A stretch of 63,507 nt of DNA, filler included, from Hausera hauseri (lineage: Eukaryota): NCBI GenBank assembly GCA_046269625.1. It is 10 parts of 10 records of this genome, joined end to end, with 100 filler letters (N's around TTAATTAATTAA, not from the genome) between each part and the next. Parts side by side here need not be neighbours in the genome. Positions count along the whole stretch, not along the records: positions 19,715 to 28,098 come from JBJURY010660996.1; 9 more parts are not named here. The stretch is one strand, 5' to 3'. Below, one piece after another: positions 19,715-28,098 of this stretch (positions within the stretch are counted from its first letter, which is position 1; every line of letters starts with the position of its first letter). Made by a program: the position numbers and the translations under genes. The notes beneath the pieces were generated by a model, which worked only from the letters and a program-made list of their open reading frames with translations, was not told the origin of the DNA and ran no database searches.

Positions 19715-20980
19715 ACCTCCCGTGTCAAAGTGAAAGCTATAAAGGTTAAGAAACAGAAAGAGAAAAACTGCAAAACGAAAAAGTGTCAGTCGGTCTTAGC
19801 GTGGACAAGACGTTGGGTGCCTTCTACTGATTTTCCCTCCTATACTTCCTGAATGTGACTGCGTGTTTTGTCTTTGTGCGGTGTGTTTGCTTGCAGAGTT
19901 TGAAGTTGGGGAAAAATTGTCGGATTTTGTTGTGTTGTGTCGGGCAAAGATGAATCAGAATGAAGAGAAGGTGAAAAAGGAAGAGATTGATGAAGACAGA
20001 TGGTTAAAGGTATTCAAGGTGTTAGAAGGAGGACTGATAAAGTGTAGTGGCGGATAAAGGAGAGAAGAGAGTTAGAGTAGAAGTTGGAATTGAATTATGT
20101 GAAAGAGTAGAAGTGGAAGATGAAACAGAGGTAGTGGTAGAGATAGGAATAACGATAGGGATAGAAGTAGAGAGAAAGTTGTGAACCGGAAATGAAAGGG
20201 GTAGAAGACGATGTGTGAAGAGAAAGGGGGAAAGAAAGCGCCGAAGATGGGGAAGGTGTGGAAGGAGAAGGAGAGAAAAAGAGAAGACGGCAGAGATACA
20301 AAACGGAAGAGCAAGAAGATAGACAAGGCAAAGGAAAGTAGTTAGAGGGTGGTGTGCAAGAGGTTGGAATGATGAAAAGTGTAGATGGAGAGATTGGTGA
20401 AATCGAAATGGTGTTTGGTGGAGGAGGTATTGTAAGAGGAGAGAGCAGGTTTTTATCATGGGATGAAGGTGTTAAAAGGCTTGAAGGTGCAAAATCGCAT
20501 GGGAAGAAAGAGGCTAAATTGTGAGAAGAAACTGAAATGGAAGTTTTGGGTAAAAATAGGAGAAAGTGGATTAAGACATTGAGGAGAGATGGAACGCGAA
20601 TTGTTGGACTGCTGCGCCTCGTATAAAGATGTTGGCGGAGAAGCGACTTCGATGGGAGACGTATCGTCAATGAAGAAAGCCGGCTCAGCGTTGTTGATGT
20701 GAACTGTTACTTCTTTGTAGTATTTGAGAATGATAATGTTGTAGGAGTGCAAGCGAATTACTTTGTAAGGACCGACATAGAGGTTGAAAACCACATGGCG
20801 TTTGATTCTTTAGCCAACCCGAATCGTCGGGTATGTAGGGTTTATTTGCGTGAAACAACCTGCAAAATGTGTCTTTGCTGATCTCAACGAAGCGTCTCTG
20901 TGCTGCTTGTATGGTTTCGTCTGCCGGAGTGTTGTCCAGCTCAGCTCGAATAATGATCTGATAGAAGTGCCAAATAATGA
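19715..20980 (-). mobile_element. CsRn1-clade gypsy family, 3' fragment (integrase C-terminus, S/P/T tail, PPT)
   Basis: Homologous to 25400-26672; contig ends at the PPT. Confidence 0.85.
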
Positions 20981-21101
20981 TTTTTTGCATTCTAAATTTA
21001 TCGTCAATCGAATTTAATTCATATAATCGCAGATATCGTGCAACTCTCAACTATTCCAAGAATTTAGAGCTGAAGATTACGTTGAACTAAAAGAGGAGTC
21101 A

Positions 21102-21114
21102 TGGGTCACCCCGA
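21102..21114 (+). promoter_or_regulatory. Degenerate tRNA-Trp-like primer-binding site
   Basis: TGGGTCACCCCGA versus canonical TGGTGACCCCGA, preceded by CA; the second copy has TCGGTTACTCCG at 42992-42981. Confidence 0.5.
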
Positions 21115-21256
21115 AATTTTTCACCCGTCGCAGCGAGGCTGAGGTCCCGACCGCTCATCCTGCGCCATTGGGTCGGACGGCGCCGTTCGCTGCCGCCCCG
21201 CAACAGGCCCCAAGGCACATCACCCCTTCCTACTCCATCTTTCTTTTTTTAAATAA

Positions 21257-21439
21257 CATATATACACATACACGGCATTACACTCACACACTGCAGCCAT
21301 TCAAAATTTCATCTCTACCTTACTCCACTCCTCTGACTTTTATCTAACACACAATGGATCTCTAGTACCCCTCGCTGGAAATCTACAATCGTCCTCAACC
21401 CACATTTGTCTTCACATTCACCTCTGCATCCGTGGTGGC
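21257..21439 (+). pseudogene. Ubiquitin-like (Sde2-like) domain in frame with the start of Gag
   Basis: TAAIQNFISTLLHSSDFYLTHNGSLVPLAGNLQSSSTHICLHIHLCIRGG followed directly by MDSS (ATG at 21440). Confidence 0.65.
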
Positions 21440-24400
21440 ATGGATTCGTCACCCACAACTGATACCATGGACAAACTCACCAACTACAGATCCCCATCAT
21501 TCACTTATCCAATCAACGTGCTTCCAACATCTCTACACAACACACCTTCCGAACTCATTCACCCTGCACCGAATACTTCCTCGACAGCCAAAACTCTACT
21601 CAAACTTGGCTAAAACTGTACCAATTTTGGCTCCAATCGCAAAACGTCGTCGAATCTTTATCCAAAGCCAACAGCCTCTTTTTCCATTTACCAGCTTCCA
21701 TCAAAACTAAAATTACCAATATCATCTATATCCTTTATCACACTGACCCATATACTCAACTTCACAATGCCGGTCTCAAGTTTACTAAGCCTTCAATCGA
21801 TTCAATCATTCAAAGTTTCTTCAACGATAACGCCATGGACATTCAAAAGCCCTCTGAATTCTTACGTGCATTGTTGTCTCAGCTCAACACCCTTGGCGTA
21901 ACATCTGAGCATAGTTTAGAACTTGTTTGTCGCTATTTTTTAATGCATTGCCGCTTCAAATAATAACTTTGCTTACCGTGATCGAGGTCTCCACGGCTCT
22001 GGACAAGCTAACCGAACTGGCGGACAAAGCATATAAAGTACTACACTCCCACACAGCAAGAACTGTCTCTGCAGCATTAACAACAGACCAACAACAACAA
22101 AATGCAATGTTGCAGCAACAAATTGCGCAATTTCGCACGGAAAATGAAAAGTTACAGAAGACAATTAACAACATAAACGAAAAATTAAACGAATTACCGC
22201 TGCCTCGACGGGGTTTTTCTAGGCCTGCTTCCCCTAATGTATTTAATCAACATAAAAAACGGTCGCCTTCGCTCGGGCGGCCGTCTATTTGCTATTATCA
22301 TAACAAATTTGATAACAATGCTCAGAAATGCTGCATCGGTTGTAAATTTTACTCCCCTGAGTTTAATACAAGCAACATCCTTTGCATCTATCACTCAAAA
22401 TTTATCACAAATCACACAAATGCCTATCTGGCTGTACCTGCAACACACACATTAACACCAACACTACTAAGTTCACACAAAACAGTAGGTCAAACTCACC
22501 AGCTCTAAAAAATTGATTTCGCCGCTGGGACACACGGCAAGTCCTAGCAAATGCAGTAACCTGCAAAATGTTAGCCGACATATTTCTTTTGCTGTATTCG
22601 CGTTGGAAGCAGCAGTTGTCACGGCAACAAAGCAAAACATTAACTTTATTATAGGCACCGGCGCAGCAATCTCTCTATTGCCACCAATACAACATATCCA
22701 TAACAATTACACTTCACAAAAGCAACTGTTCACTGCGTCCGGTGAACCTTTACAAATTCTTGGAGTTACCAAATTAACATTTACTCTTCCACACCTCCCA
22801 AACTCATTCACATGGAAATGTACAATAGCCAATGTACGTACACCTATATTGTGTGCAGACTTTATGTCCCACTACAATTTACTTGTAGATTGCAAACGAT
22901 GTTCATTAAAGTGCGGAAATAATCTTAATCAAATTAGCAGAATTTTGGTGACCACCTCGGCGATCGCTTTCAAAAAGTCAATACTAAAGCAAAAGACCTA
23001 GGATTTAAATTATTTTTATACTCATACATTATACAGAAATTTTTATTACGGTGACAAATACGATATTGCCAACTGCGTGGCACATATTACTAATAGCACA
23101 GCTGCAAATACCATCTTCAACACAAACATCCTGCACCAAATACCACCCAGTCACAACACCTCGTCACAATACCAGTCACAACTCATACCTCAACTGCATC
23201 CAGTCACGATCCATCGACACCATCGGATAACTTTTCATAATTGCCTTCTAATCTACAGCAATGCATTTCGTACTCCTGTATGCGTCTGTTGCAGAAGGAG
23301 AAATCATTTATACCACCTCAATACACTTTCCATCACAGTAACAGCACATCAGAGACCAATACGTCGAAAGGTCCGTCTGCTATTGCCTCGTCGTAGACAG
23401 GCAGTAGAGGCTGAGTTTCTCGTACTGGAAAGATCAGGCATAATCAGAAGATTCAAATCCCCCTGGTTTTCACCACTGCATGTAGTTCCAAAAAAAGATG
23501 GCACCTTTCGCCCATGCGGTGATTACCGCCAACTCAAGACCATAACAATAATGGATGCCTACTCTCTACTATTAATCAATGACATCTTTCACAGGCTCCA
23601 CAGTTCGACCATTTTTCATGCATTGATTTGCACGAAGCATAACACCAAATTCCTGTGGCCCCAGCAGACATTCCGAAAACGGCTGTCATTACACCTTTCA
23701 GCCTTTTAGAATATCTCTTCATGTCTTTTAAACTCCGTACCGCTTTTCAGACCTTCCAAAGGCATACAGATACAGTCCTATCAGGTTTAGACTTTGTCTA
23801 TCCCTATATTCATAATATCCTAATTGCATCATCTTCTTCGAAGCAGCACCCTGAACATTTACGTTTGATCTTCCAACGCTTGCACCAAAACAACTTGCAA
23901 ATCAATTTTTCTAAATACTCTTTTTTTCAACATAAGGTCAACTTTCTAGGACATGTTATTAGCTCCTCCGGATATTCACCTCAGCCAGAGCGCATCACCC
24001 AGCTCAAAAACATACAACTACCACGTACACTAACAGAGATGTGTTCTTTCCTCGGAACCTTGCATTTTATTCATATGTTCTACACTGCTGCACTCTAATC
24101 GCTCCATTTGCATCCCTAAGCTCTGGCAAGAAAAAACAGCCTATTCAATGGACCGCCAAGCTAGTCAACGCTTTCGATTACCTCAAAGATAATCTAAAAA
24201 CCGTAGAAATACTGGCCTATCCCGACTCCCATGCACAACTCTTCTTAACCACGGACGAATTCACAACAGCTGAAGGTGCTGTCTTCCATCAAGTCAAAGA
24301 TGGATCCCATGAGCCACTGGAATTCTTTTGTCGAAAATTCACATCACAAGAGCAATGATATTCTACCTTAGACCGAGAGTTGCTTGCAATGGCCATTGCC

Positions 24401-26673
24401 GTAAAACACTTTAAACATCTACTTACGGCACGAACTTTTACCATACAAACGGATCACAAGCCCTTACTTCAAATTCTGACCATAAAATCGACTTATTCAG
24501 GCCAGGAGAGGCAAATATCGTATTTGTCCTCATTTAATTTTGTAATTAAGCACTTAAACGGAGTCAACAATTTAATAGCTGACTTTTTGTCCCGATCGCT
24601 CAGCTCGATTAACTTCACACCAATTTTTCCTCATTCCAAATTTCAACAAAACAAGCCACCTCCTGACATTCTTAAGTCTTTTAAATCGTTCAAAGCCATC
24701 GACGGTGTTGCCTTCGACACTTCCAAACCTAATAATCCTAAAGTCATCCTTTCTGAATCGCTTCAAAAAGAATCATCAACAGCATCCATTCGTTGCATCA
24801 TACCGGTGTCAAGGCCACTTTTCTCCTCTTACAACGCCAATTAGTATGGCCGTCGATGCACTCTGACGTGCAGGTACGGGTTAGGCAATGTGTGGCATGC
24901 CAAAAATACATAGTTACTAAGCACCTAACGCCACTACTACTTCATTTCTCCTGCACTTCTCGCTTCGAATCTGTTCACATTGACCGTGTATGCCCATTAT
25001 CCTTAGTCAACAGCCATCAGTTTATCCTCGCAATGATGGACCGTTCCTCGTGATAGCCAGAGGCCGTCCCGCTTCGGAGCACCAACACAGAAATCATCGC
25101 AGACGCTTTCATCCGCACTTGGATTAGCAAGTTTGAGTCACCACGCAACATCATTTCTGACCAAGGTCCACAGTTTGAATCCAACCTGTTTAAAGCTCTT
25201 GTCAATCGACTGAGAATTAACCACATTCACACGTTACCATATCATCCTCAATCGAATGACCTTCTGAAACGCTTTCAACGAACGATGAAAACGTCTCTCA
25301 AAATCCTTGCTGAGTCTAATTGCAATTGGACTACACTCCTTCCGTACGTTCTGCTTGGCGGGCGGAACACATCATCTACTTCTACAGGATGTTCACCTAC
25401 AGAAGCATTAATTTTCACTTCCATCAGATCATTATTCGAGCTGACTGAGCTAGACAATATTCCGACAGACGAAACCAAACAAGCGGTACAGAGACCCTTC
25501 GTTGAGATTAGCAAAGACTCATTTTGCAGATTGTTACACGCAAATAAACCCTACATACCCGACGATTTATATACTGCCAAGTTAATTTGGCTAAAGAAAC
25601 AGACACCGTATGGTTTTCAACCTCAGTATATCGGCTCTTACAAAGTAATTCTCTTACACTCCCACAACATCATCATTCTCAAAGACGACAAAGAAGTAAA
25701 ATTCCACATCAACAACGCTAAACCGGTTTCTTCATTGACGACACATCTCCCATCGAAACCACTTCTCCACCAACATCTTCACACCATGCGCAACAATCCA
25801 AAAATTCACCCTCCATCTCTGTTCAATGTTTTAATTCACTTTCCCCTCCGTTTTCTCCCAAAACATCTACTTCAATTTCTTCTCACAATTCAGCCTCTTT
25901 CTCCCCATCCGATTTTGCACCTTCAAGCCTTCCAAAAACTCCTCCATCCCTTGGTAACAACCTTCTTTCTCCTCTTACAGAACTTCCTCCATCAAAAACC
26001 ACTTCTACTTCACCAATCTTTCCATCCACCCCTTTAATCATTTTAACCTTTTGCATACCACCTTCCAAATACATTCATTCGCCTTCTCCATCTTCTTGCT
26101 CTCTTTTGCTTTGTACCTCTTCGCCGTCTCCTCTCACTTTCTCTCCTTCTCCTTCAACACCTTCCTCATCTTTGGCGCTTTCTTTCTACCTCTCTCATTT
26201 CCGCTTCGAAACTTCCTCCTCTTTTTACGTCTATCCCTACCTCTGTTTCTGTCTCTACTACTACTTCTGTTTCATCTTCCACTTCCACTCTCTCACACAA
26301 TTCAATTCCAACTTCTACTCCAACCTTTCTCTTCCTTTATCCGTCACTACACCTTTTATCATTCCTCCATCTTCTAACACTTTCTTGAATACCTTTAACA
26401 TCCGTCTTTAACAGTCTCTCTTCCTCCTTCACCTTTTTCTTCTCTTCCTTCTGATTCATCTTCGCATAATACAACACTCAACAAAATCCGACAATTTTTT
26501 CCACAACTTCAACCTCTGCAAACAAACATATCGAATAAACACAAAACACGCAGAGTCACATTCAGCAAGTATAGCAGAGATAAATCATTAGAAGGCACCC
26601 AACGTCTTGTCCACACTAAGACCAACTGACACACACTTTTTCGTTTTGCGTTTCACTTTGCCACGGGGGGTGA

Positions 26674-26773
26674 TGTGGTGCCCACAGCGGCCGGTGCCCT
26701 CTGGCCAATTTCGTTGGACACGGTCGGGCATCCGCCGCCGCCGCGTCGGGCACATAGCCGGGGCGGATCTCCC
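26674..26773 (+). repeat. 100-bp GC-rich 3' terminal segment (U3-like, starts TG after the PPT); imperfect inverted complement of 21100-21226
   Basis: Same 100-bp length and same TCTCCC end in the other copy (37355-37454). Confidence 0.75.
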
Positions 26774-27079
26774 GTTTAGAGAATCGTGTCATTAACTTAA
26801 AAATATTCGCAATGATCTACGAATCTTTTCAAGAAATGGAAAGTACATTAATTACTATAAAAGTGATTTGAATTTAAGCATCCACGACATTTGTACACAA
26901 TATCAGTCGTTTTCATCAGACTCTAAAGAAGTAAACATTCTAGCTGTTGATGATGATTCATTTAGTCATATACATGACCAAACGTTACCATTACTAAAAG
27001 AAGAAAGCGTACTATCTTTCATTAATAAGCTAGATCTAGAATTATCTGTACAAACGAATTTTCCGAGATTGGGATGTTG

Positions 27080-27560
27080 AGACGCGATGTCAAGATTGCC
27101 CATTTATCGTAACTTGCTATGGAAGTAATGGAAACGTATCCAGATAAATTGCTCAAAATCCTCGGCATGCCATTTCCAAAATTCGTTATCGGTAAAGTGT
27201 TATGTGCAATACTCAAAGCATTGCAGTATCTGAAAACGAAACACAACATTATGCATCTGGATATTAAGCCATCGAATATGCTACTCAGTACTTGAGGGGA
27301 AATTAAATTATGCGATTTTGGAATCTGTGCAAAACTCAAAAATTCAATTGCTAATTCGCGACAACCAGGGTGTATTGGTTATATGGCACCAGTACGATTG
27401 AAATCAACAATATACGACGTTAGAGCTGATGTTTGGTCACCCGATATATCATTAATTGAACTGTCTATTGGGAAAATTCCGATTGATGGCTTTAAATCGG
27501 AATCCGAAAGTATAAAATGTATTATTGATGGTAAACTGTTGATTTCATTTCCAGTATCAG
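27080..27560 (+). pseudogene. MAP kinase kinase (MKK7/MKK4-like) kinase-domain fragment
   Basis: AMEVM..YPDKL, YLKTKHNIMHLDIKPSN, IKLCDFGI, GCIGYMAP, YDVRADVWS; in-frame stops; HRD changed to HLD. Confidence 0.85.
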
Positions 27561-27599
27561 AAAATATCAGACTTCAAATAGAACACGGCTCTCCGATTT

Positions 27600-28098
27600 A
27601 TCAAATTTTTTCAACAATGTCACCATCGCCATTCTGGTTTTGTTGAGCACTGGGTTCTTAGTAAATCAAATGTTCTCTGAACCATTAACACTCCACGTGC
27701 ATAATGTGAAACCAGGAGTAAATTATGAAAGTACGTTTAAAACTTTCTGTTGGACTGAAGGCACATATAATATACCAAAAAATTGAAAATCCAAAATCTG
27801 AAGAATGGAATTCAGCATGAAAAAATACAGCATAGGTTACTACCAATGGATGCCTTTCATACTCTTTGCAATGACAGCTCTGTTTTATGTTTCGATATTA
27901 TGTTGGAAATACTTATCCAACAATATTCCAGGAATAAATATTGAACATCTAACCAAACTAACGAAGGATGGCAAAAATCTGTGTATAGAGGACATTGGAA
28001 AACGATTAGAACAAATTTCGAAAATCTTACTCAAGCTTCTTACTAGTCACAAACAGGTTTCCAATGAAATTTTTGCCAAAGTTAAAAGTGCATTAAAA
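27600..28098 (+). pseudogene. Innexin fragment
   Basis: FCWTEGTY then (frameshift) YYQWMPFIL...FY...W; cut by contig end. Confidence 0.85.

Follow-up and report, generated by a model that had tools for sequence, protein, structure and literature searches.

Introduction

The CsRn1 clade of Ty3/gypsy retrotransposons (CsRn1, PwRn1, AgCR, Kabuki and Boudicca) is defined by the CHCC signature of its gag, CX2HX9CX3C, and is also characterised by a primer-binding site (PBS) for tRNA-Trp and by 4-bp target site duplications (TSDs) (PMC2582038). In this work, we have analysed a decayed Ty3/gypsy element at positions 21088-26773 of a 63,507-nucleotide stretch of joined sequence parts from Hausera hauseri (GCA_046269625.1; the whole stretch is called the window below), whose two ends are inverted and unlike. 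To our knowledge, direct long terminal repeats (LTRs) are the necessary product of two-jump reverse transcription and are common to all integrase-bearing LTR retroelements and retroviruses. The piece of the window that we have examined runs from 19715 to 28098 (JBJURY010660996.1), and holds one full copy of the element.

Some other described systems come close to this element in one respect or another. The bipartite PBS of Ty3 is a case of 5'-3' cyclisation. In Ty1, the CYC5 and CYC3 sequences serve the 5'-3' cyclisation of the LTR-retrotransposon RNA (PMC3592414). Tyrosine-recombinase retrotransposons of the DIRS1 type have inverted, non-identical terminal repeats instead of LTRs (PMC5006619), and processed pseudogenes of HERV-W have been made by LINE-1 (PMC5016936, PMC5537654). 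Our literature searches have returned no account of a gypsy element whose arms are inverted.

The ends of the element form an imperfect inverted repeat

The element and its terminal features are listed below.

21088-26773, + strand: decayed Ty3/gypsy element with gag, protease (PR), reverse transcriptase (RT), RNase H (RH) and DDE integrase (IN)
21088-21226, + strand: 5' arm, 139 nt, 65% GC, balanced in G and C, an imperfect inverted repeat of the 3' arm
21102-21114, + strand: motif resembling a tRNA-Trp PBS, TGGGTCACCCCGA, 14 nt from the 5' end
21216-21226, + strand: inner-end 11-mer of the 5' arm, CACATCACCCC, the exact reverse complement of GGGGTGATGTG at 26667-26677
26668-26673, + strand: polypurine tract (PPT) of six G, directly before TG
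26674-26773, + strand: 3' arm, 100 nt, following the PPT, with a U3-type LTR start (TGATGTGG...) and the end ...GGATCTCCC

When 21088-21226 is reverse-complemented, it can be aligned colinearly with 26667-26773, that is, with the 3' arm and the preceding G-run (72% GC over this interval). The local alignment score is 25, against 10.9±1.9 in dinucleotide-preserving shuffles, and none of 2000 shuffles reaches it. When the perfect 11-mer is left out, the score is still 23 against 10.6±2.0, again with no shuffle among 2000 reaching it. The inverted similarity thus stands about 7 standard deviations above the null, or about 6 without the 11-mer. In the direct orientation, the same ends score 13 against a null of 10.9±1.9, which is the null level, and a repeat search has found no direct repeat linking the ends or lying within 1.3 kb of flank. 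The two direct LTRs of a Ty3/gypsy element are absent at 21088-26773. At the RNA level, RNAcofold predicts 81 intermolecular pairs between the ends against 24±9 in shuffles, with a ddG of -22.6 against -10.2±3.8 kcal/mol (equalled in 2 of 300 shuffles), so that the ends favour each other over self-folding.

A preliminary description of this DNA had reported the lack of a direct LTR pair and the inverted complementarity of the ends, and both hold. Every shared block that it named is present, including the perfect 11-mer, and its measures of the termini are exact for the copy at 21088-26773: 14 nt (21088-21101) precede the PBS-like motif, and exactly 100 nt (26674-26773, TG...TCTCCC) follow the PPT. 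It had also named shuffled controls as the comparison on which the pairing should stand or fall, and the pairing is clearly better than the controls in both alignment and RNAcofold. The end anatomy is real, and is neither chance nor an effect of composition.

The element boundaries, 21088 and 26773, are taken from the comparison of copies in the preliminary description. The inverted similarity extends to within 1-7 nt of both of them. Within the repeat, the best-conserved part lies at the inner ends, and the outer termini are poorly matched. The complementarity may run 6-7 nt past 26773 (CTAAAAG at 21087-21098 with CGTTTAG at 26769-26780), in which case the 3' end would lie nearer 26780; this extension is statistically insecure.

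Both arms have a PPT/U3 junction at the inner end

The only canonical relative with a CHCC gag that we have found is a metagenomic contig of 4.5 kb, L001, whose first and last 141 nt are identical, and which we take to be a high-copy LTR element circularised by the assembler. It carries a CHCC gag, a tRNA-Trp PBS (TGGTGACCTCGACGTGAT) and a TATA box in its LTR. By inspection of the sequence, the LTR is ~353 nt long; the TATA box lies past LTR position 100 and gives an estimate of ~165 nt for R+U5. The 14-mer GGGGGGTGATGTGG at 26668-26681 of the window, which joins GGGGGG to TGATGTGG, is identical in the PPT/U3 junction of L001 (0 of 1000 shuffles). Since this junction is shared, the 3' arm is a genuine PPT with the start of U3, and the PPT stands directly before a TG-starting 3' LTR, as in Ty3/gypsy elements.

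On the opposite strand, the 5' arm reads GTAGGAAGGGG/TGATGTG at its inner end, and the counterpart in L001 is GTAGGGGGG/TGATGTG (the slash marks the junction). The 5' arm thus has a reversed PPT/U3 junction at its inner end, and for this reason a diverged PPT-U3 module in inverted orientation describes it better than a succession of U5, PBS and leader. The 11-mer CACATCACCCC and its complement GGGGTGATGTG occur once each in the window. The sequence that adjoins the 5' arm on its right is as strongly G-poor as the remainder of the element, while the second, inverted copy at 19715-20982 is G-rich on the + strand. As the adjoining sequence keeps the polarity of the element, the 5' arm is not the tip of a larger inverted element. 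A match to GGGGTGATGTG in another contig, L013, lies inside a protease open reading frame (ORF) and was rejected as chance.

The preliminary description had further proposed a degenerate tRNA-Trp PBS, for which the match is weaker than was stated. The motif GGGTCACCCCGA matches 10 of the 12 bases of TGGTGACCCCGA, and the remaining six bases of the 18-mer are without a match; the full 18-mer finds no match at up to 3 mismatches, and no 5' LTR adjoins the motif. The proposal that joining the two ends rebuilds a single LTR of 114 bp is not supported: it depends on this 10/12 motif, and the LTR of L001 is ~353 nt long with a TATA box. The suggested priming by the 3' end over a PBS relic would depend on the same motif and, like the suggested 1-LTR circle opened at a fixed point, is a hypothesis.

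In L001 (2707-3083), the start of U3, TGATGTGGCGACGTGA, resembles the element's own tRNA-Trp PBS, TGGTGACCTCGACGTGA, in direct orientation, with CGACGTGA in common, and the U3 start of the window element, TGATGTGGTGCCCACAG, likewise looks PBS-like. Such U3 starts may be a hint of contacts between U3 and the primer tRNA or the PBS in the CsRn1 clade, by analogy with the bipartite PBS of Ty3.

The arms differ more than decay would explain

We have estimated the decay of the element by simulating substitutions on its own codons and counting the resulting stops. The 8 stops in 1382 pol codons correspond to ~5% neutral decay; with 10% decay, 7.5% of the simulated sequences had 8 stops or fewer, and with 15% decay none had so few. 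After ~5% decay, ends that were initially identical are expected to be ~90% alike. The arms, in contrast, are at most 73% identical in the most favourable gapped alignment, with many indels. The observed/expected ratio of CpG is ~1 throughout, arms included, which means that the arms are not decaying especially fast.

Because pol has decayed by only ~5% while the arms are so different, the arms were unlike already at the time of copying. Their divergence (at least 27%, plus indels) exceeds the decay of the element, so the ends are not two decayed copies of one LTR, and a non-canonical mode of copying can therefore be fairly inferred. That is, two different ends were reproduced at copying, which canonical LTR replication does not do, and we consider this the strongest new argument. 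New as well, next to this contrast between decay and divergence, are the PPT/U3 junction shared with L001 and the reversed junction in the 5' arm.

The element belongs with the CsRn1 clade

The internal features of the element are listed below.

21227-21439, + strand: leader, pyrimidine-rich and G-poor, containing a TATATA stretch; the first gag-like frames follow it
21440-22508, + strand: gag with frameshifts and stops
22290-22343, + strand: CHCC zinc motif CX2HX9CX3C within gag, CYYHNKFDNNAQKCCIGC
22513-26630, + strand: pol, disrupted by at least 4 frameshifts; its 1382 codons include 8 in-frame stops
22651-22665, + strand: protease active site, reading IGTGA in translation
~23338-24092, + strand: RT domain within pol
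~24095-24775, + strand: RNase H domain within pol
24793-24910, + strand: integrase H2C2 domain within pol
to ~25500, + strand: rve core, followed by a Ser/Pro/Leu-rich tail

The preliminary description had identified a Ty3/gypsy element with a DDE integrase, and three kinds of evidence agree with it. Pfam matches are found for RVT_1 (23655-24098), RT_RNaseH_2 and RT_RNaseH (24041-24844) and Integrase_H2C2 (24793-25053). In translation, an rve core (HID...SDQG...YHPQSN) continues the Integrase_H2C2 frame, and tblastn with pol homologues also recovers this core. By all three, the domain order, gag-PR-RT-RH-IN, is of the gypsy type. The same tblastn comparison places three frame changes in PR-RT-RH-IN and a fourth in the C-terminal tail, and the 8 stops counted above lie in frame along the pol path derived from it; two of them fall in the rve core, at the SRW of relatives. 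Judged from its sequence, the copy at 21088-26773 is dead.

The gag motif CYYHNKFDNNAQKCCIGC is the exact CX2HX9CX3C signature of the CsRn1 clade, and by this motif together with similarity the element can be placed there. In a library of 1.8 billion proteins, the nearest relatives of the RT are ~50% identical and come from spiders, a pseudoscorpion and a cestode, and the best relative of the integrase is a metagenomic protein, P0161, with 65% identity. A Ser/Pro-rich integrase tail at 26468-26623 also matches P0161 in tblastn, so that pol reaches to ~45 nt from the PPT. For the gag ORF, the homologue search returned none. Scans of metagenome, viral and prokaryote-genome contigs gave distant relatives only (at most 43% integrase identity), and among the scanned contigs a CHCC gag is found in L001 and L004 only. 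When we tested the leader of L001 against its U3, no complementarity appeared, and long end pairing is hence not a general trait of the clade.

Gypsy-type integrase genes were also found in contigs labelled as Bdellovibrionaceae, Sedimenticola, Thiodiazotropha, Ekhidna and other metagenome-assembled genomes (L004-L018; L004 is the one with the CHCC gag). These contigs are most likely animal host DNA misbinned into bacterial genomes.

At 21227-26660, G is strongly depleted on the sense strand of the element (GC skew -0.15 to -0.8), and both arms are balanced. The most skewed part, 25700-26500, is C/T-rich and encodes the Ser/Pro/Leu-rich integrase tail, which is also present in P0161. Several residue differences from relatives correspond to G-to-A changes (G>E, G>R, G>D, E>K, W>stop), and C-to-T changes are present too. 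G-to-A hypermutation was considered as the source of the G-poor strand and rejected, as the most skewed part is C/T-rich rather than A-rich.

Termini, flanks and neighbouring sequences

No TSD is visible at the boundaries, where the flanks GAAC and GTTT differ; the only 4-mer shared by the flanks, CGTT, is 4 nt out of register and not significant. The termini are TAAAAG... and ...TCTCCC, and so are not TG...CA. The sequence after 26773 is GTTTAGAG, with no poly(A), and no R repeat common to both ends was found; the marks of a LINE-type retrocopy are thus absent. Several candidate features were tried at the ends and rejected. The idea that the 14 nt of the 5' end are repeated after 26773, which would complete a 3' LTR, fails since 14% of random 20-nt flank windows score equally. 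Searches of the arms for a tRNA gene or an Rfam family, ribozymes included, gave no matches. A DIRS-type internal complementary region is likewise rejected, since the junction, tips and arms, when compared with the interior, give best scores of 9-16, which is background.

The neighbouring features in the examined piece are listed below.

19715-20982, - strand: second copy of the element, inverted and 5'-truncated, equivalent to element positions 25403-26671 (C-terminal part of the integrase to the PPT)
26850-27640, + strand: protein kinase pseudogene, Pkinase positions 77-211 in two pieces
27700-28098, + strand: innexin fragment, Pfam Innexin positions 81-162, with the YYQWMPF motif and stops before it

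The second copy lies head-to-head with the full copy, with 105 AT-rich nt between them, and is 86.5% identical to it over 1187 positions in 28 blocks with 27 gaps. Its homology ends at 20982, equivalent to 25403 of the full copy, and the piece ends before its 3' arm. Its PPT is GGGAGG, not GGGGGG. Copying that begins at the 3' end of an RNA typically leaves such 5'-truncated products, but a simple deletion gives an equal picture. On the other side of the element, the kinase pseudogene has an in-frame TGA, HLD for HRD, and several frame changes upstream. We also considered that the kinase frame might run across the insertion, with a TSD of zero length, and dropped this, as the Pfam kinase domain starts ~75 nt downstream of 26773. 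The host DNA is AT-rich, and the innexin fragment in the 3' flank indicates an invertebrate animal as host.

Discussion

Our leading reading, to which we would still give somewhat less than an even chance, is that the element represents a CsRn1-clade lineage with unlike, inverted, U3-derived arms, whose unit would be produced by colinear copying of a full-length template (most likely an RNA with paired ends). The mobile unit would be bounded by these two arms and not by direct LTRs: the 3' arm would be an ordinary PPT with the start of an LTR, and the 5' arm a diverged copy of the PPT-U3 module in reverse. If the arms were ~30% different already at copying, each end must have been reproduced separately from one full-length colinear template, and both ends would not have been rebuilt from a single U3-R-U5 template, unlike in the two-jump LTR mechanism. 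In the route that we consider most likely, the ends of a full-length transcript would pair in a panhandle of ~80 bp, copying would proceed over the whole length of this transcript, and the product would be inserted without the TG...CA ends typical of an integrase. Other copies would then be expected to carry like ends. End-to-end copying that starts at the 3' end should often leave 5'-truncated copies, and the neighbouring copy is one.

Several observations weigh against this reading. It was drawn from a single full copy, and L001, the canonical relative, shows ordinary LTR biology for the CsRn1 clade. At 21088-26773, neither a poly(A) nor TG...CA termini are present and a TSD is not visible, the search for Rfam ribozymes or other RNA families gave no match, and the sole endonuclease that the element encodes is its DDE integrase. 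In the paired arms, G:U and A:C mismatches number 5 and 3, which gives no signal of selection at the RNA level; such counts do not tell RNA-level selection from an inverted repeat at the DNA level.

A stronger form of the same idea is that the lineage is still living, as a branch of the CsRn1 clade with inverted U3-derived arms, which moves either through a panhandle RNA without the two strand transfers or by its DDE integrase acting on inverted ends. This we regard as possible but doubtful. If true, the element would either be DIRS-like in architecture while lacking a tyrosine recombinase, or connect gypsy retrotransposons with DNA transposons of the Ginger type.

The most serious alternative is that the locus holds a one-off, rearranged, dead copy of the CsRn1 type, which lost its 5' LTR, gained a reversed LTR fragment of a related family, and had its 3' LTR cut after 100 nt, with any like-ended copies being segmental duplicates. 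The surroundings suit this well, as they are a graveyard of repeats and pseudogenes, in which the inverted, truncated copy lies 105 nt upstream and the broken kinase and the innexin follow downstream; arms that are ~70% alike fit LTR fragments of two related families, 100 nt looks like a truncated U3 beside the ~353-nt LTR of L001, and neither a TSD nor TG...CA ends are seen. However, random breakpoints would hardly be expected to leave similarity running so close to both boundaries, which would be an odd coincidence, and the 5' arm is joined to the leader with the element's own strand polarity. We hold this history to be rather unlikely. Were the locus merely such a single corpse spread by segmental duplication, it would have no wider interest.

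A second alternative is that these are processed retrocopies, made in trans by a LINE-type RT from the RNA of a canonical LTR element. The ends would then be the transcription start and the RNA end, and the complementarity would be a cyclisation structure. Colinearity with an RNA-like unit (short stretch, PBS-like motif, ... PPT, U3) and the 5'-truncated neighbour agree with this, and precedents exist in the HERV-W processed pseudogenes (PMC5016936, PMC5537654) and in Ty1 CYC5 (PMC3592414). Yet no tail follows 26773, no R repeat is present at both ends and no long TSD is seen; an R+U5 of 14 nt would be extreme beside the ~165 nt of L001, where the TATA box lies beyond LTR position 100, and L001 is without leader-U3 pairing. 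Retrocopying of this kind appears improbable to us.

We give even less credit to DNA transposition, in which the DDE integrase would serve as a transposase on the inverted arms, making the element an intermediate between gypsy and Ginger types. Ginger elements are said to have well-matched outer terminal inverted repeats (TIRs) starting with TGT, and 4-bp TSDs. In the window element, inverted termini do occur together with a retroviral-type integrase, and DNA copying would preserve unlike arms; a precedent exists in Ginger, where gypsy-type integrases can serve TIR-bounded DNA transposons (PMC2836005). But the repeat is best conserved at its inner and not its outer ends, the outer ends are TA.../...CC and not TG...CA, no 4-bp TSD is seen at the boundaries, the element retains gag, PR, RT and RNase H, and the 5'-truncated copy fits RNA templating better.

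Finally, that there is no real feature, with complementarity arising from two GC-rich stretches and misjudged boundaries, is very improbable and is largely refuted by alignment and cofolding: the arms are indeed 65-72% GC in a context of 34-41% GC and the extension of pairing into the flanks is weak, but no shuffle among 2000 reaches the score with or without the 11-mer, the direct-orientation control stays at the null level, and the 11-mer and its complement are each unique in the window.

If a gypsy lineage does still multiply with such unlike, inverted arms, its gag-pol-integrase machinery would be able to work with a different terminal architecture. The element would then be a test case for the origin of DIRS-like or Ginger-like elements from gypsy ancestors, and also for the bypass of strand transfer and for long 5'-3' RNA pairing in retroelements.

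Comparison with known systems

Among the described systems, the CsRn1 clade is the nearest in content. The window element has the exact gag CX2HX9CX3C and the PR-RT-RH-IN order, a G-rich PPT followed by TGATGTGG, identical to that of the CHCC-bearing L001, and a tRNA-Trp-like motif near its 5' end. It differs from the clade in lacking a direct LTR pair, its ends being inverted and unlike; the PBS-like motif is preceded by only 14 nt and the PPT followed by only 100 nt, and neither a 4-bp TSD nor TG...CA termini are visible.

In architecture, DIRS1 is similar, as both are retroelements with inverted, non-identical ends and no evident TSD. The window element, however, has a DDE integrase with an H2C2 zinc domain (rve core HID...SDQG...) and not a tyrosine recombinase, our search has found in it no internal complementary region or copy of a circle junction, and its arms are ~100-140 nt long and only ~70% alike.

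With Ty1 CYC5/CYC3 and Ty3, the element shares complementarity between a 5' leader and the U3 with which the RNA ends. The extent is different, since the window element has ~80 pairs over more than 100 nt and Ty1 ~14 nt, and the yeast elements retain ordinary LTRs. The HERV-W pseudogenes are comparable as RNA-colinear copies of LTR elements that lack complete LTRs and show 5' truncation, whereas the window element has no poly(A), R repeat or long TSD, and its host is an invertebrate. With Ginger (PMC2836005), the element has in common a gypsy-type integrase together with inverted termini; Ginger elements are without gag, RT and RNase H, while the window element has both RT and RNase H.

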